Part shown: positions 5,748-19,593 of the stretch, one piece after another | How the letters are laid out: every line of letters starts with the position of its first letter | Position numbering within the stretch: position 1 is the first letter of the stretch | NCBI GenBank assembly: GCA_001179505.1 | Contig: CDMY01000793.1 | Span: 1-19,593 of the forward strand | DNA from: Vitrella brassicaformis CCMP3155 | Taxonomy: Eukaryota; Protista; Chromerida | Reading direction: 5' to 3' | Length of the DNA: 19,593 nt | Translations under genes and position numbers: made by a program | Notes under the pieces: generated by a model | Databases searched by the model: none | What the model was told of the DNA's origin: nothing | Seen by the model: the letters and a program-made list of their open reading frames with translations, nothing else

Positions 5748-8700
5748 CTATGTTTGGTGGCTGCTCATCGTGTCCGTGTAAGCCTTGGATGGCTTGGGGT
5801 TGGTCTTGAGCTCCATGGCCAAGTGCTCACTCCCGGCGAACCGACGACGATACTCACACAAACACAACTCGACGTCCTTCTGCACACACATGACGTCACA
5901 TGACGTCACATGACGTCACACCACATGCCGCCATGGGATGGGCACAAGCAAGAGGGAGAGAGATGCTGCTCACGCGAGGAGGGTTCCGCCAGCCCCTGGT
6001 TGCGTTGACGTTCCAGTTCTTCTCGAAACGCGCCTTCATCAGATACCTGAGAGACACAGCACAAGACACAGGCATGTGTTGGATGGATGGATGGATCTGT
6101 GGTCGCTGGCTCACTCGTTGATGTCCATTATGTCGAGCTCCTCGGGGACACTGTAGCTCTGCAGCTGCGATAGGTCCCTGCACGAGCCGCGAGGTGGGGC
6201 CTTCCCATAAGAACCCTCCATCGCGCGAGGCAACTGCATTACAGACACATCAACGACATGGACGACGTACCGTTCTTCGCACTGTGCGTGTCTCCATCTC
6301 TCCTCCTCCCGTTGCCTCCCCTGCCCTCCCTCCCTCCCTCCCTCCCTCCCTGTCTCTGGTCTGTACATACCCATCTGATGTTGTGTGTGTAATTGGGGGA
6401 CTTGTACACGCCCAGCACGTGTATGTCCATCGCCAGCTCGCCGTACACGAAGGTGAAGGGCGCCTCGCCCCGCAGCACACTCTCGGGCAACATCGTCACC
6501 AGACGTGGCGCCGAGCCGCTGCACAAGTAGTAGTCTGAACCACACACGGAGAGAGGGAGGGATGCAGGGAGGGAGGCGTTTTTAGAGAGGGAGGGAGGTA
6601 GGCTGGTTGGCTTACTGGCGTCTGTTGGGCCGATGGTGCGGCCATCTGGGAAGCGAAACTCGTGATGAATCTCCGCCGAATCGTCCTGAGAGTTCGGAGA
6701 ATGAAGAAGGACGGCTGTCTCTGTGTGATGTTTCTGTGTCTATCTCACTGACAGGGTAATCGAATGTGGCCAGAAACACACGGCAGAGGTTCCACAATGT
6801 GATGTTCATCCACAGCTGGCCAGCACACAACACCGATCCATCCATCCATCCATCCATCCCCTGACGGCTGCCTCTGCTGTTCACTCACCCCTAGGTATCT
6901 CACGAGGCAAGAGCCCTCAGCAAACTGCTCGCTCACCGCCCGCACCTCCAGCACGTCAAGCGAGTTGATGACGTCCGGATCCTCAGACACACTACCACCT
7001 CCACCACCACCACCACCACCAGCCGCCTTGCTCCCCTCCCTCTGTTTCTTTTTCTCTCTCTCCGCGCCCCCTCTGCGTCTCATGAGGTGGGCGTCCGCCC
7101 CTCCCGCCATGTGTGGGATGAGTGTGTCGCTGTGTATGGCTGCGTCGGGGACAGTGCGGATGGGGTTGCTGATGGGGAAGCGCCGCTGGCGGGCCGACGC
7201 GAAGAGCACGCGGAAGCGGTCCAGCTCGCTCTCGTGCATCCCTGCAGACAGAAGGCCCGAGAGACAGAGGCAGAGAGACAGAGGGAGAGGTGTGCCGGAC
7301 TTGAGTTGCTGGTGGAGCTCTTTGTGTGTACATGGCAGTCGCTCTGCGGGCTCCCATACGGGCTCTTTGAAGCGCTTCTTCACCTGAACGAACAAACGAA
7401 CAACGAACAGGGAAGGGAAGGCACTTTCATGTGTGTGGGGTGTGGTTGAATGGCTGTGTCTCGTTGTCTACCAGGTACAGGTAGCGCCGGCCGTTCCACT
7501 TGGAATCGAGCAAACCTGAAGACACAACACAAACCACACAATACACACCAGATACACACATGACAAACACGACCACCCATCCACCGATCCACCCATCCCT
7601 CCATCCATCCATCTGACCTTCGAACATTGATTCGTCTGCATCTTCCTCCTCCTCTTCCTCCTCCATACGCTCGTCATCCTCACACTCATCCTCACCACCA
7701 ACGCCCACACCCACACCCACCAGCGGCCCTCGCTTCACCCCCTGGCCGCCCCCAGACGCCAGACGAGGGCCCCGCTTGCCCGACCCCACAGCGCGGCGGC
7801 GCTGGGTGGTGCCCATGTAGCCTGACGAGCTGCTGCTGGTCGCCTTCGGTTTGGACGCTGGGCGCGACGGGCTGGATGAGGAGGGGGTCAGCGATGGGCT
7901 CGACGTGTGACGGCGCGACCGTGACTGCGACTGGGGCCGTGGCCGTGGTGTGCCGCTCCGACCCATGCGGGCCTTCTTATGCTGTGCCTGCTCCGCCTGC
8001 GCGGCCGCCTCCAGCCGCCGCTTGGCGTTCATCTTGGCGTGGCGGTGGGCTCGGTTGTCTCTCCCCGCCCCCTCCTTCTGCCCCTGCCCCTGCCCGTCTT
8101 TGATGGACAGCCCAAACACGGCGGGCATCCTGATCGGGCCAGCCCGCAGGTCGCAGCTGACCGGGCCGGTGAGGAAGCAGCCGCGGTGCAGCGCCCGGCT
8201 GACGCGGCCCACGCGGCCGGCTCCACCATCCAGATGGAGTGGCTCCAGAGTGCCGTTCTGGGCGTGCTGCTTGACGAGGCCCCTCAGGTGCGCTGCCAGG
8301 GGGGCGGCCTTGCCGTTGCCCTTGCCCCCACCAATGGCAGCGTGGGGGACAGGGAGATGCGGGCGCTGCTGGTGCTGGTGCTGGTGGCGGTGCTGCTCGC
8401 GGTGGTGGTGGGGCTGTTTGTCAGCGTCTTCGGCATTGTGATCGTCATATGTGTGTGTGGAGAGGGAGAGGCCGTCGGGCAGTGTGCGGGAGGAGGCGAG
8501 CTGGGTGAGCTGTGAGATGAAGTCGCGGGGCGGGAGGACGTAGAGGGCACGGACGAGCCGCTCCTGCGCCTTGCGCGAGAGGTGCTGCCACACAGACGCA
8601 CAGACACGGAGATGGACACGGTGTGGTGGTGTGTGGTGGGGAATGGGTGTGTGTTGTGATGACTGACTGACCTTGGTGGGCACCGTGGGCAGGTCGCGGG

Positions 8701-12767: not shown

Positions 12768-15014
12768 TAATGAGAGCGAATTTGGTTTGGACTGTCAGTC
12801 CTTTTGCTGACAAAGGACGACACGTAGCATGTCCGTTTGCACCGGTGCTTCTTGACGTAGTTGTGGCATATCCCCAGGTGGGGCAGCCCCGGTATGTCAC
12901 CCAGAGTCTTCTGCACACAGAGGCAGGCAGGCAGGCAGGCAGGCAAACGACGGCATCAACAGATGAGTGAGTGGGATGGGTGTCTGTGTGCACGTGAGCG
13001 GCACTTGCCCGATAGATGTCGGCCAGTGTCCATAGAGAAGGCGCGCTGGCGAGGGCAGGCAGGTTCAGCCTTCCCAAGTCCACATTCACACACAGATCAC
13101 CCCGAGACACCAGCCCACCCTCCAGCCAAGTCACCACCCTTCTCAGCAGCTCCCCTCTGGCGGCCTCTTCGTTTGCCGTCCCCCCCTCCCTCGCCGCCAC
13201 CCATCCCTCGATCTCCCCAGTCTGCAGGTCGTCACATGGGAATCCCGCCTCAGGCTGTGGCGCCCCTGAAGGAGACGCCAGGAACATGTTGGCCCACTCG
13301 GCTTTCCTCTCCATGTTGATGCGAAAGTTGGGCTCGAGGAGGCGCAGACCCCTGAACTTGGCCGCGATGTAGTTGATGGGGATGATGCGGTGCACAGGCA
13401 CTCGCCTGCCCCGCACAAACACGGCGGGGATGAGCAGATCTCGTCTGGTGAGGATGGCCAGGTGGATGAGAAGGAAGAGCGACTGGCGGCCCACAATGCC
13501 GATGACGGTTTCGTCCTTCTTGGGGCCTTCGAGATGGATCTCCGCCTGCAGGATCTGCCTGCCTCGGAGGTCGTAGTGCGAGGGCGTCCACCACACGCCC
13601 AGCATTCGCATGATGAACACCTTGAGCGGCTTCATCTCGAAACACGTCGCGTGGAAGCCCGCCGAAGGCCGGGTGAACTCGTCCAGCAGCGGCTGCTCGC
13701 CAAGAGTCCAGGGGCTGTTCCGATGGAGCATCATGTTGCGAAGGGCCGTCTCAGGGATGACCTGACACAGCGGCTTGAGCCTCCTGCGAAGGATCCGCCA
13801 GTCGTGGCCGCCAAGGGCCTCGGCGAGAGCAGGGTTGGCGGGGTCTCTGCCTTGCTCCCCCAGCGGCAGCTTTGGCTGTGTGGTCTTGCCTCTGAAGGCG
13901 AGTTCGATCAGGTTTTGGTTGTGGTGGAGGTTCTCGTCACAGGCCGCTTGTGTGAACTTCTGGCCGTACTTTTGGGGATCCATATTGCTGACCTGCAATG
14001 CACACAGAGACAGGGGGACAATGGGCGACCCCCCTCACTCAATCTGCTCATTGCCCATTCATTCATCAGTCACCTGGAGCATGTAGTCCCTCTGCCCGAA
14101 GTCGATGGCCTCTGGAGTCGACCGCAGCAGGACGGCACCGATGTTGAGGAGCGGTCGCCTGTTGACGCGCTTATTGTAGGAGAACTGGATCTCCCATGAG
14201 GGGTCGGAGAGGGGCTTGAAGGCCCGGAGAGGATTGTTGGCAAAGCCCACATCCAGGTCGGTCAGCAGCACATTGTTGCCGCGCCGCAGTGTCTTGACGC
14301 TGACACACACATAGATAGAGACATAGAAACGAAACTCAGAAGAGATCTCCGTCTGTCTGTCTGTCTGTCTGTCTGTCCCGTCTGTTTAAGGCGTACATAC
14401 ATATATTCCTTCTTCTGCGAGTCGGAGCTGAGTCTGCTGAGTGTGTAAGTGTTCTCCTCGTTCTCGTGGCCCCCCGCCTTCATAAACTTGTTCCTGCTGT
14501 ATGTCTCAGCCTGCCCCGAAACCACGCTCTCGTTGGCCCGCATGCAGTGGACACAGGGGAACCGACCACACTCACGCAGGCACCGCTCGTCAGTGCAGAT
14601 GACGTGCAGCGGCCGCTGCGGCAGCCAGTTGAACCGCAAGGCGGCGTAGTAGAGGTTCTCAACAAAAGCCATGAAACTCCCGCCGGCAATGGCAATCATC
14701 ACCGTCTCGGCGCCCCTGACGTCCTGCTCCTGGTGCAGAGAGCCGAGCTGATCACGGAGAGAATCCCACGGCACGAAGACGCCGGCCTTGCTGGTGCTGT
14801 TCTGAGCGCATTTGGGAGCCCATGTGCCGGTGGTGGAAGGGCTCTTGCGATGGGCTGGATGCCTTCGTTGGCCGTCTGGGTGGCTGGGATGGAATGGCCG
14901 TCCGATCGGCAGAATGAAGAAAACAACGAGTATGTGCAGGCTGAATGTGACGGCAGCCAGCAACACGCGTCTGACGGGACATTTCTGAGCCGCAGATCTA
15001 TCGAGAAACGGCAT
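12767..15014 (-). CDS. Type II membrane nucleotide-diphospho-sugar transferase (GT77 family, XEG113-like two-module architecture), about 655-660 aa
   Basis: Exons 15014-14401, 14299-14074, 13992-13009 (GC donor; alternatively to 12994 with a GT donor) and 12910-12767. Features: N-terminal signal anchor VLLAAVTFSLHILVVFFILPI, GT77-like KKEYIVKTLRRGNNVLLTDLDVGFANNP with a DxD motif, LNIGAVLLRST, FHAT, and LAILTRRDLLIPAV. Confidence 0.82.
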
Positions 15015-15228
15015 TTGTGGGGGAAGATCTGCTCGCTAAGCTCGCACTGAGAAGGAAGGGAACCACGACTGACCTCCAGCTGTAGCGCTAAGCCTTCATC
15101 TGTGTGGGTCTGAGCCCTTTCTTTCCCCTCTCACCGCCAGGCCAGGCAATCCGCAAGTCTGATCATCGCGCTAACGCACGAGCCATCGCAGCTGATTGAG
15201 GACCAAGCCGCTGGCCTCGTTGGTCACA
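15015..15228. promoter_or_regulatory. Probable compact bidirectional promoter between head-to-head genes 3 and 4
   Basis: Only 214 nt separate the predicted ATGs at 15014 (-) and 15229 (+). The segment lacks the microsatellites typical of introns here. Confidence 0.5.
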
Positions 15229-18200
15229 ATGGACGAGGTCGCACCAGCTGACGCCAGTGCGGCCGCCCCCGCTGCAGACATCGACATGCCCGATGGACCT
15301 TCTGTAGGAGCATCGGCGCATCAGGGGACGGGAGCAGCGATGAGGCGCGAGCAATCAAGTTTGGCGAGTGCGGAGAATGGTGGTCCAGATGAGGTGGGCA
15401 AGAAGGTGGGAGGTGAGCGGGGTTGCCTTGTGGAGAGGCGAGAGCATCACGGGCCCTCAACACTGGCTGCAACACGGGAAGGTGATTATGGCAGGCATGG
15501 CATGGCATGGGGGGATGGCATCATCGTATGTATGCCTGTGTGTGTGTGCGCGTCTGTGTGTATGTGTCTATCAGGGGCTTTGTCAGCGTTGCGTTGCTTG
15601 CTTGGGCAGATCGGCATTGTGTCTGGCCACGTCCCTGTGGCCTCCACAGGTACAGGCAAGATGAACAAAGACACACACCACGGCAGCAGATTGAGAGCAT
15701 CATGTGCACTGCGCCTGCCTGGCTGTCTGTCTGCCTTTGCAGATTGGCGCATCCTGTATGACGTCAACCACGACGCTTTCTGGGCTCGTCTTGTCGCCAA
15801 CGGATACGAGAACATCTATGGGTGGGAGAGGCGAATATACACATGCACACACACACACAGAGGGGCGCTGCACTCACATGACATGATGCGTGTCATGTGT
15901 GTGTGCATTTGCCCATCCATTCATCAGTCCGTATGTGACGTTGGATGACGCCCGCAAGCGTCACGACCTGGAAGCAGTCCGGTCATTCGGACCAAGGGTG
16001 AGCGGCACAGCACACAGCACACGTCACCCACTGACATACCTACCCACCTACACATCCACCTATATCTCCCTTCCTCCCTCCTTTGTTGCCTTGCTGCAGG
16101 ACGCCGCCTCCATGGCATTCGACAGCAGTGCCCTCATGGCCGCCAACATGGACCCTTCCCTTAGAGACCTGTTGATACATCCCTCGCCCTCCACACACAC
16201 CGGTGTGGATGACGAGAAGACCAGGGCGGCAGCGGCAGACGGCACTGAGGACCCACATGCACCACGACCATCGGCAGCAGCCGGGCCGTCACCGTCCACA
16301 CAAGGATTCGCCCCCGATGCGCCGCAGAGCCTTAGTGTGGGCGTCGGCACGTCAAGGTCTTCGGCAGAGCTGTGCGACTACGATGCTATCGTCATTGGAG
16401 CCGGCACTGCTGGGCTGGTCGCCGCTAGGGATTGCCTCTCACACAAGCTGACAGTGGGCGTCTTCGAGGCCCGTGACCAAGCCGGCGGCCGCATCCGCTC
16501 ACACACACTCGCCGGCACACCAACGCACTCACACCCATCATCGCAGGCCAGTGCATCATCCGCTGGCCAAGCAGCACCCACCAGTGCCGCTGGTGCTGGT
16601 GCTGGTGCAGGTGCAGCAGCAGCCAAGGAGGATGGCGTGATGGTAGAGTTGGGGGCCAACTACATCCATGGCTTGGGCGGTGTGGGGCCCGTCGATAAGA
16701 ACCCCTTGATCGGTTTGGCGAGGGCTCAGGGGCATGCCCTTGGTTGGGTGCCGGGACGGGAGGGCGTGAGCGAGCCGTGCGACATCGCCGCCTTCATGGA
16801 TGTGGGCAGCGGGACGCGTGTTGACCCCGTCAAGGTGGCCAAGTGTGACCTGGTCTTCAGGGCAGTCCTCCAAGAGATCAAACGGAGAGGTGCGTGTGTG
16901 CCAACATGACCATGACCACGGAGGCATAGCGGCACTCATCATCTTTATGCCTGCCTGCCTGTACATGTGTGTGTGTGAGTGTGTGTTCAGCTCGTCACGA
17001 GTTCAATCCGTGTCAGAAGCATCCCCTGTGGCAGCAGACGCCCCCCACCCTGATGCACAGACAGTACGACCTCGCCATCGGCAGCCAACACACCACCGGA
17101 CGGGTGTGCGCACCCGATGACCCACGCCACCACCGCCCCAACGAGCCATCTGCCGTTGCCATATCCTCCACTGTTGCCATCCGCGAGACCACCCGGCGTC
17201 ACGAGATCCAGTTGTGGAAGGACCATCAGGGCGAGATCAGCCGTCTTGTGGACACCATCCTCCGCCCCCCCACATCGAAATGGCCTGAGGCACAGCTCCC
17301 CCTTTCGTCGCACGACGCCCTTCGGCGACGCCGCGCAAAGCACCGCAACCCGCACAGACCGTCGTACGCCGACATCGCCCTTGCTACCACGAGACCAGGC
17401 AAGCTGAAGGAGCAGTTTGAGGCCCTGCTGGCCGCCACGGCTCCCCATGACTCCCTCCACATCCAGTGCGTGCACCTCTTCCGCAACAGCATCGCCTGGT
17501 GCGTCGACGTGCCAGGCAAAGACAAGGCGTATGTCCCCATCATGGTTCGCACACGCGAGAGCGCTCGGGCGGCACTCGATCGGGCGCTGTTGATCCGCGA
17601 GAGGCTGCGTCGGCAGGCCGGATGGACACCCTCGCAGCACCAGCAGCCGGCCGATGGATGGACCGGCGAGGTCGATCCCGCAGCCGTCCTGGAGGCGGCA
17701 GCAGCGCGGCCTGACGAGAGTGACGACGAGAAGAAGAACAACGAAGAGCGGCCCAAGAAGCGGCACAAGACGGCGCGCGGCGGGATCAAGGGAGAGGGAG
17801 GCGGGAAGGACAGCCGTGGGCAATCTGCAGATGGCCCGCGTGTTGCCAAACGCAAGCCGCGACGCAAGAGCAATTGGGGTGGGCCTCGCCCTGGTGCGGG
17901 CAAGTGGATAAGGCGGCCGAGGACGCCAGATGGAGACCCCCAAACCTCTGACGACGATGATGCGAACGAGTCGATGATTCTGGCTGATCGATCCGGCCTC
18001 TGGGGCGACACTCTGGTGCTGCGCAGGCGTCTGCTGCCCAAGCCTGCCAGGGGGTCGGGCCCCAGCGGACAACCGGCGAGCGGCAGTGACAGCGACAGCG
18101 AGGGGGCGGAAGGCAATGCCGTGGTGGACCAACCGGATGGTGACGATGGTGATGATGGTGACATGGAGGGTGAGTTCGGGTCGGATGACGGCCTCTCGGG

Positions 18201-19593
18201 GGACGGCTGCCTGACGAGGGCAGTGGGCGTGCGGGGGATCAAGGGGGCAGTGGCCGTGCGGGGGTGCCAGGTGGAGCTGCAGCGGCAGCGTGCGGCCGAT
18301 GGCGGCACCTCCCACATCTCCCTGAACGTCCGCAAGTCAGCGGGGCGCATGGTCAAATCGATATCATTTGACGTGCGGGTCACATCTGGCGCTTCACATG
18401 GGAAACTTCTCGCGTCCATTCAAGTAGAGCGCCCGTGGAGGCGAGAGCACATCCGTGCCGCCCTCCAGAAGGCCGTCGAAGCTAGGGACCAGGTACGTAC
18501 CGTGCGCACGCACTGGGAACGACATTTGAAGGGGATGGGGTGAGTGAGATGCATGCTGCTGTCGTTTGTGTCTTAATCTCTTTCTGTCAGCACTATTGTG
18601 GCTCCGGCAACCAGCAGACGGCTGGGGGAGATCATGACGCTCAGGCAGATGGCACTGCCATGGACATGGACCACAGTGGTGGTCTCCGACTCCGCAATCG
18701 TCTGCTGTCCAAGCCCAGCACGGCCGCCCGCGTCAATGGCGAACCCAAGTCGCCCTCCGCCAGACCCAGCAGGTCACCGTCAGCGAATGGCAGCCGCAGC
18801 AAATCGCCCCCTCTCCCGTCCTCTCCCGCCTTGCAGCATCGCGAGCAGACAGAGGACGTCGACATGGACTGCGATGACAGCAACAAGGATGAGCCTCCTG
18901 TCAACTCGACCCGCATGGACAGGGGCGACCCAGACAGCGAGCCGCCGGAGCAGAACAGCGGCAGCAAGACACCCCGTGCCGAGGGCGCTGGTCGCACGCC
19001 ACAGCCCCCCCCACCGCCAGCTTCTGCAGAGGAGAAGCCAGCAGCTGCGGGCAAGAAGCGGCGTCGTTCATCCGAGGGGGACAATGTCGAGTCACTCGCA
19101 AAGGATGAGGACGAGATGGACGACGGCGACATCCAGGGCAGGGAGGAGGGGGAGGAGGGCAATGGGGCTGACGGCACCATGACACGCGAGGAGGCCATCG
19201 CATTTGCTCGTGCGGAGTTGGATCGTCATGGCAGGCCCAAGAATCTGTGGCTGGAAGTGCCCAGCAGCAGGGAGGCATTCAGGTTGACGGTCCACTTGGC
19301 CAGGGGCACCGAGCGGCTCAGCAAGACGCTGTCGGTCTCACCCCCGTGGACGGCGCAGTCGGTCCGCGAGTCTTTGCGTGAGGCCATGGCCAACCGCGAG
19401 GCCATGATCGCCCGTCGGCATGCCATCGCCACACGGCAGGGGTCCCGCAGCCGGAGCCGCTCCAAGCGTCAATCCCGCCGGCAGTTCCATGACAACAGTA
19501 GCGACGACGGCAGCGGCGAAATGAGTGAGGACAGCAGCAGCAGGAGCGGCAACCACCACAGCAGCCAGGTCCCCGAGGAGGGCCATTCCAACA
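15229..19593 (+). CDS. 3'-truncated gene: possible SAM-like segment + N-terminal FAD-binding half of a flavin amine oxidase (LSD1/PAO family) + three AP2-like repeats in disordered sequence
   Basis: Exons 15229-15481, 15575-15649, 15743-15821, 15928-15997, 16100-16889, 16991-18492 and 18591->19593. Phases are consistent and the last exon is open to the window edge. Motifs: DAIVIGAGTAGLVAA, FEARDQAGGRIRS, VELGANYIHG, KNPLIGLA. Confidence 0.85.
16376..16889 (+). other. Rossmann FAD-binding start of an amine-oxidase domain, with an about 45-aa Ala/Ser/Gly-rich in-frame insertion
   Basis: GxGxxG, EARDxxGGR and ELGAxxIHG occur in the canonical PF01593 order. The insertion lies between GGRIRSH and VELGA. 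Confidence 0.9.

Follow-up and report, generated by a model that had tools for sequence, protein, structure and literature searches.

An unannotated, expressed gene at a contig end of Vitrella brassicaformis joins the start of a flavin amine oxidase to an array of small, possibly AP2-like modules

The window comprises all 19,593 bp of contig CDMY01000793.1 (Vitrella brassicaformis CCMP3155, assembly GCA_001179505.1), and its right-hand end carries, on the plus strand, a gene of seven exons (15047-19593) that is absent from the public annotation of the contig. The gene is real and expressed, and it is cut off by the contig end. As predicted, its product would start with a short N-terminal region, followed by ~170 residues that correspond to the beginning of a PAO/LSD1-superfamily flavin amine oxidase and then by at least three repeat units, each with an L-R-x-R-L-L-x-K-P-like motif, a linker that is disordered and either acidic or basic, and a ~85-residue alpha-beta-beta-beta-alpha module. 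We favor, with a probability of about 0.55, the notion that this protein is a split oxidase, in which an array of AP2/integrase-type modules lies within the oxidase domain and the C-terminal half of the latter is located beyond the contig. An oxidase with inserted AP2-like repeats had been proposed in a preliminary description based on the DNA letters alone. In its main features that observation holds, once the gene structure is corrected, and the AP2 label is plausible, if weakly supported; for this copy, the word "interrupted" and the analogy with the Tower domain of LSD1 are unproven.

The structure of the gene was derived from four public sequencing runs mapped over positions 13700-19593, of which X1 and X2 have the character of DNA, whereas X4 and X5 contain spliced contigs and are RNA-like. 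Five of the six GT-AG introns are supported by spliced contigs in both X4 and X5, with plus-strand joints at 15646>15740, 15820>15927, 15996>16099, 16887>16989 (cut +2) and 18489>18588 (cut +3), and the sixth (15482-15574, 93 nt) is based on record-length arithmetic and on its GT..AG ends. When the exons are joined (Table 1), the frame that starts at the ATG at 15229, with in-frame stops upstream, runs without a stop for 1257 codons, as far as the contig's last base. The RNA contigs begin at 15047 and 15055 and are colinear to at least 19470, covering exon 6 (17080-18218 and 18233-18489) as well as exon 7 (18648-19052, 18710-19132 and 19129-19470), and in the two RNA-like runs the depth of the gene resembles that of its neighbor. 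In addition, the G+C content at third codon positions is 0.75-0.77 in exons 6 and 7, compared with 0.70 in the neighboring gene's exon. The public gene calls on the contig include none between ~15014 and 19593, the last one called being the minus-strand P0003. These data modify the gene as it was initially drawn, that is, as one continuing frame from 16376 onward: the frame does remain open after splicing, but two introns must be removed from it and one of them (18493-18590) shifts the genomic frame; similarly, the flavin adenine dinucleotide (FAD)-binding start was correctly placed at 16376, but the gene itself begins four exons upstream.

The oxidase exon and the region from 16991 onward belong to one gene, as the preliminary description had supposed. 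RNA contigs splice exon 5 directly and in frame to 16991, the region not being skipped, and the RNA coverage is colinear from this position to the contig-end region; because of this in-frame join and colinear coverage, the stretch is read as one transcript. The existence of two separate genes was ruled out by the RNA joints together with the phase-exact splicing. It was also observed that reading through intron 5 leads to a stop codon, and that the junction of this intron is annotated as well in a partial duplicate of the locus, found on contig CDMY01000262.1.

This duplicate (L001, positions 7441-8373 of CDMY01000262.1) is a scrambled partial copy, a ~600-bp fragment, of the exon 5/intron 5/exon 6 junction, in which window positions 16484-17150 are found in direct orientation, with ~88% identity and deletions, and a piece of exon 7 (18694-18902) is inverted. 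Its annotated product, P0001 (336 aa), matches the seven-exon gene over only ~150 residues, and the second half of P0001 is probably not real coding sequence. Three segments of the window (16458-17048, 18625-18821 and 19019-19593) are multi-copy, the depth of the DNA runs being 1.5-4x the baseline there and variants of the paralogue type being found. Near the contig end, the depth is 1.5-2x the baseline and variants are present at 19356, 19367 and 19421, which suggests that the contig ends by running into a repeat common to other loci. The CDMY01000262.1 fragment is the only other copy found, and it offers no sequence for the gene beyond 19593. Likewise, when an annotated full-length protein was sought with exon 6 (by a word search and by an exhaustive HMMER search, the latter against 1.84 billion representatives) and with the oxidase portion of exon 5 (by a word search), only P0001 and a low-complexity protein, P0002, were recovered.

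The repeated nature of the junction region has to be weighed against the reading given above. In the segment 16458-17048, the depth of the DNA runs is 3-4x that of the surroundings, and the variants found there (16785 T>C, 16790 G>A and 16822 T>G) are the bases of the second copy on CDMY01000262.1. Bases of this type are carried by the RNA contig of X5 that crosses intron 5 and, because they match the second copy, this spliced contig may derive from a paralogue. One could thus conceive an assembly artefact, in which an oxidase exon from one paralogous locus would have been joined to a module-array gene from another; the raised depth, the paralogue-type variants and the fact that the DNA unitigs break at 16664-16838 and 17009-17080 would fit such a chimera. 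However, the same exon 5-intron-exon 6 junction exists in the second genomic copy, and for this reason the junction is not considered an artefact. Moreover, 16838-17009 is spanned by a mismatch-free DNA unitig, the RNA contigs flanking the junction are similar in depth, spliced contigs from two runs cross it and the splice phase is exact, all of which makes a chimeric assembly very improbable. The exon 5/exon 6 join at this locus is therefore safe, in view of the contig from X4, the RNA depth, which is equal on both sides, the exact DNA unitig and the phase-exact splice. As a separate observation, the mix of variants in X2 and X4 (C at 16785 and A at 16790, but T at 16822) fits neither of the assembled copies, which hints at a third copy or at an error in the reference.

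The identity of the N-terminal segment is sound at the level of the family. The FAD-binding start (DYDAIVIGAGTAGL...EARDQAGGR) is found at 16376, as initially described, and exon 5 ends with ...LQEIKRR at 16889. Flavin amine oxidases (GR2 FAD family) have an N-terminal beta-alpha-beta dinucleotide-binding motif, with GxGxxG, an acidic residue closing beta2 and R-x-GGR. The GxGxxG motif (GAGTAG), the acidic residue in FEARD and the GGR sequence are all present within residues 259-290, and Pfam recognizes in exon 5 both NAD_binding_8 (5e-11, 43.1 bits) and Amino_oxidase (PF01593; 5e-8, 33.1 bits, above the cut-off of 19.8), although the latter match is restricted to profile positions 2-38 of 443. 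Sequence matches in the PDB are confined to the same ~50 residues; the best are putrescine oxidase and 6-hydroxynicotine oxidase, and there are others to protoporphyrinogen oxidase and to further amine oxidases. In a language-model feature search of the Atlas with the oxidase segment, all of the best clusters were N-terminal fragments of PF01593 proteins (score 0.94). Within this family, an assignment to the LSD1 or PAO branch would depend on motifs read by eye. Indeed, the 88 residues from 335 to 422, which had been likened to a stretch of LSD1 preceding the Tower, yielded no Pfam match and only chance matches when phmmer was run against the PDB, so the proposed equivalence is not borne out at the sequence level, a fact that also speaks against the split-oxidase interpretation. 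Ahead of the oxidase, Pfam detected no SWIRM domain in the two sequences scanned, the genomic frame 15196-15945 and exon 1. The candidate region for such a domain, residues 85-159 (15575-15997), is non-repetitive (…DWRILYDVNHDAFWARLVANGYENIYGPYVTLDDARKRH…) and is split over three small exons of ~25 aa each.

From the end of exon 5 to the contig end, 835 residues follow in the open frame. The initial impression that more than 800 residues lacked oxidase motifs was correct: Pfam found no family at E<=10 in exons 6 and 7 or in the three module pieces described below, and regular expressions for the C-terminal oxidase motifs gave no match in the 835 residues or in any frame of the contig, a result that counts against a split oxidase. 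The composition is mostly that of acidic, Ser/Pro-rich or basic linker, with basic clusters (RPKKRHK, KRKPRRK and GKKRRR), among which three more complex blocks of ~85 residues stand out (aa 552-634, 829-923 and 1114-1205), denoted here as modules A, B and C. The modules align loosely with each other (20-25% identity) and have a common ...V.PPW/RPW...helix end, and a self-comparison by BLAST revealed no internal repeats. Short motifs of the LRRRLLPKP type precede the modules and may mark the start of the repeat unit.

The fold of module C is that of an alpha-beta-beta-beta-alpha domain. An AlphaFold2 model for which the three other blocks supplied a small alignment (predicted local distance difference test (pLDDT) 79.4, predicted template modelling score 0.66) shows a helix, three strands and a long helix (E29-32, E40-48, E51-59 and H65-91), the N-terminal helix being additional with respect to an AP2 domain, which has ~60 aa and consists of an antiparallel sheet of three strands packed on a C-terminal helix. 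For exon 6, a single-sequence AlphaFold model was too poor (pLDDT 39) to be used in a fold search, but the same order of elements is seen in it at module A (H135-149, E156-162, E166-172, E179-184 and H188-208; pLDDT 44-54) and at module B (E425-432, E440-448, E452-461 and H484-498; low confidence). When module C was aligned exhaustively (VIA) with 48,161 representative chains, the first rank corresponded to residues 317-386 of 9g6k_UG, from the large subunit of the T. gondii mitoribosome (Z 6.5, root mean square deviation (rmsd) 2.4 A over 64 residues). The same residues of 9i05_Xz (Z 5.7) and the chain 9hqv_Yn (Z 5.3) were found as well, both being AP2-containing proteins and mS130 standing in the top 20. 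Chain Xz of 9I05 is mL153 and chain Yn of 9HQV is mS130 (AP2IX-6), and both are described as "AP2 containing" (PMC11742926); 9g6k_UG appears to be mL153 as well, judging from the identical residue range. It should be considered that this label applies to the whole mL153 and mS130 proteins, and that the aligned residues may not be the AP2 domain itself. A search by shape in the ESM Atlas pointed to a cluster of integrase arm-binding domains (Arm-DNA-bind_3, TM 0.54), among XisI, HPF and SH2.

Several results weigh against an AP2 relationship, and they have to be considered together with the possibility that the modules adopt another small two-layer alpha/beta fold, such as that of a double-stranded RNA-binding domain (dsRBD), of HPF/YfiA or of a chaperone, which would bind RNA or proteins and leave the protein without DNA targeting. 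The extra N-terminal helix gives module C the alpha-beta-beta-beta-alpha order of elements of a dsRBD, and HPF/YfiA, YbjN-like proteins and type III chaperones tie with the AP2-containing chains, falling within one Z unit in the range of 5-6.5, values that lie below the 7-8 typically reached by unrelated models. The canonical ERF and PfAP2 structures are absent from the top 50 of this alignment. Foldseek found nothing in the PDB at E<=0.001 with module C, listing dsRBDs at E 0.4-0.5, and the re-alignment of its top 1000 entries added no AP2 entry beyond 9hqv_Yn. At the sequence level, Pfam did not detect AP2 (PF00847) at E<=10 in any of the pieces searched (exons 6 and 7 and the three modules), a profile of the module alignment had no match among the PDB sequences, and the Atlas feature search with modules C and A gave scores (0.78-0.80) that represent noise; besides, the models of modules A and B are of low confidence. 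The Toxoplasma AP2 proteins matched by module C sit on rRNA (PMC11742926). On the other side, the tightest superposition (that at 2.4 A) is on an AP2-containing chain, two of the four AP2-containing mitoribosomal proteins are in the top 20 of the 48,161 chains, and Vitrella has a massive and divergent expansion of AP2 domains (PMC4501334). We consider a non-AP2 fold rather unlikely and, on the basis of the models, regard the AP2/integrase-type fold as the best single candidate, with slightly better than even odds, although it is not established. What was earlier described as AP2-like repeats thus has no sequence support (Pfam, the 1.84 billion representatives or BLAST) and support at the level of the fold for module C only. 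Similarly, the idea that the protein carries its own nucleic-acid-binding modules gains something from an alpha-beta-beta-beta-alpha module whose best structural neighbor contains AP2, but the relation with AP2 is not established.

The split oxidase also has to be confronted with the notion that only a stump of the enzyme exists. According to the latter, a partial duplication or rearrangement would have joined a module-array gene to what was the first third of an amine oxidase, and the product would neither bind FAD nor catalyze a reaction, being a module-array (transcription-factor-like) protein, if functional at all, or the product of a transcribed, decaying gene. This would be consistent with the lack of oxidase motifs in the 835 residues and elsewhere on the contig, with the piecemeal copying of the segment (as in the scrambled duplicate on CDMY01000262.1, with its direct and inverted pieces), with residues 335-422 being too divergent for any sequence method and with the long low-complexity insertion within the oxidase part. 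However, the GxGxxG motif, the acidic residue and the GGR sequence are intact, the 1257-codon frame is open across six introns in a gene expressed like its neighbor, and this frame is still open where the contig ends, so both forms of the stump are deemed unlikely. An N-terminal oxidase segment cannot hold FAD by itself; considering this, together with the preservation of the FAD motifs and of a long open frame, a complete enzyme would be favored. That the contig stops at 19593, inside the open frame, weighs against this reading too, since the word "interrupted" needs a C-terminal half, and it is for this reason that the term is unproven here. Of the two proteins proposed initially, a self-targeting demethylase and a catalytically dead FAD-sensing factor, either may be encoded, since the assembly stops inside the gene.

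Assuming a split oxidase, the modules would be very divergent AP2/integrase-type nucleic-acid-binding domains, the array would be placed inside the oxidase domain near the site of the LSD1 Tower, and the remaining part of the oxidase would be found on DNA that was either not assembled or assembled separately. Such a protein might act in three steps: the basic clusters would bring it to the nucleus, the modules would tether it to DNA (or RNA) and the flavin domain would oxidize a nearby amine, either a histone methyl-lysine or a polyamine. In a more specific version, which at present we regard as quite unlikely, an intact C-terminal half downstream would make it an LSD1-like demethylase, in which the Tower that recruits CoREST is replaced, at about its site, by a DNA-reading array of AP2-fold modules, the whole representing a chromerid-specific family missed by annotation.

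The interest of such an arrangement lies in the way these enzymes find their targets. LSD1-type demethylases normally reach chromatin through partners, such as CoREST, or through accessory domains, and ApiAP2 factors are the main specific DNA binders in apicomplexans and their algal relatives. If the proposal is true, AP2-fold modules inside an oxidase domain would constitute a built-in way to aim an eraser enzyme, so that the search for genomic targets and the erasure of histone methylation would be combined in one polypeptide, and the arrangement would illustrate the extent of AP2 module shuffling in the ancestors of the malaria and Toxoplasma parasites. In addition, that the gene is missing from the public set and lies at a contig end in a multi-copy segment suggests that the family is under-assembled and under-counted. 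This copy alone cannot settle the question, since half of the enzyme is out of reach.

Table 1. Positions in the window of the exons, selected introns, modules and motifs of the seven-exon gene.
Feature	Position	Strand	Description and basis
Exon 1	15047-15481	+	5' untranslated region and start codon (15229); aa 1-84, low complexity; RNA contig starts and translation
Exons 2-4	15575-15649, 15743-15821, 15928-15997	+	aa 85-159, short globular-looking N-terminal region; RNA joints and in-phase translation
Exon 5	16100-16889	+	aa 160-422, N-terminal part of flavin amine oxidase
Dinucleotide-binding motif (GAGTAG, FEARD, GGR)	16373-16519	+	In exon 5, intact
Ala/Gly/Ser-rich insertion	~16508-16630	+	In exon 5; followed by ELGANYIHG...NPL
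Intron 5	16890-16990	+	GTGCGT...TTCAG, 101 nt, TG microsatellite, phase 1; joint in X4 and X5
Exon 6	16991-18492	+	aa 423-923, non-oxidase; modules A and B, basic clusters resembling nuclear localization signals, acidic linkers
Short motif LVDTILRPP	17245-17271	+	Precedes module; regular-expression scan of the spliced protein
Module A	17377-17625	+	aa 552-634; predicted helix, three strands, helix; low-confidence model
Short motif LRRRLLPKP	18019-18045	+	Precedes module; regular-expression scan
Module B	18208-18492	+	aa 829-923; three strands and C-terminal helix, RPW...helix end; low-confidence model
Intron 6	18493-18590	+	GTACGT...GTCAG, 98 nt, phase 0; joint in X4 and X5, frame continues
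Exon 7	18591-19593	+	aa 924-1257, Ser/Pro/acidic linker, module C, RS-rich tail; open at contig end
Short motif LRNRLLSKP	18690-18716	+	Precedes module; regular-expression scan
Module C	19161-19436	+	aa 1114-1205; alpha-beta-beta-beta-alpha; only module with a usable model

Some additional features of the locus can be mentioned. All six introns are short and similar in length, ranging from 93 to 106 nt (15482-15574, 15650-15742, 15822-15927, 15998-16099, 16890-16990 and 18493-18590), with two of exactly 93 nt, and several of them contain TG/CA microsatellites. The gene and its neighbor are transcribed divergently: the RNA contigs end at 15026 for the minus-strand P0003 (a nucleotide-diphospho-sugar transferase-like protein of 655 aa) and start at 15047 for the plus-strand gene, so that the two 5' ends are ~20 bp apart.

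The comparison with known systems can be made from three sides. The likeness to LSD1/KDM1A comprises the membership of the same Pfam family (PF01593) and the presence of a large non-oxidase segment after the first ~120-160 residues of the oxidase domain. The LSD1 Tower is an antiparallel coiled coil of ~100 aa, located in the substrate-binding subdomain, which binds CoREST. The end of exon 5 lies at what we take to be ~10-30 residue-equivalents before the Tower exit of human LSD1 (counted from GxGxxG minus the low-complexity insert), and the Tower-equivalent position thus derives from residue counting and not from an alignment. The Tower site that had been proposed would therefore hold approximately by this count, but there is no alignment to LSD1 beyond the Rossmann motif. 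The inserted material is also of another kind: instead of a long helical hairpin or coiled coil, it contains disordered linkers and small alpha/beta modules that extend over more than 835 aa; indeed, neither the sequence composition nor the predicted models revealed a Tower-type coiled coil in the segment after the break. Further differences from LSD1 are that SWIRM was not detected in the scanned frames and that the catalytic half would fall beyond the contig; the catalytic lysine and the substrate cavity that receives the H3 tail in LSD1/KDM1 enzymes belong to this part of the domain. With respect to PAO, SMOX and PuO, the resemblance comes from the best PDB matches (putrescine oxidase and 6-hydroxynicotine oxidase) and from the ELGANYIHG...NPL sequence, which by eye is of the PAO/SMOX type. 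In contrast, those enzymes are compact (~450-550 aa) and devoid of nucleic-acid-binding modules.

Regarding ApiAP2 proteins, the chromerid genome paper described for Vitrella a large expansion rich in paralogues, with 50 genes in one cluster, and did not mention amine oxidases (PMC4501334). A full-text literature search combining Vitrella or Chromera with AP2 and amine oxidase, LSD1 or demethylase revealed no description of such a fusion, nor any ApiAP2 protein with an amine oxidase. The module of the Vitrella protein differs from those of the ApiAP2 family in having no PF00847 match at E<=10 and in its extra N-terminal helix. Nevertheless, the sheet and C-terminal helix of module C superpose best on mL153 (Z 5.7-6.5, rmsd 2.4 A/64 aa), and also on mS130 (Z 5.3), and the protein shares with ApiAP2 factors the distribution of several modules along a long, largely disordered chain.

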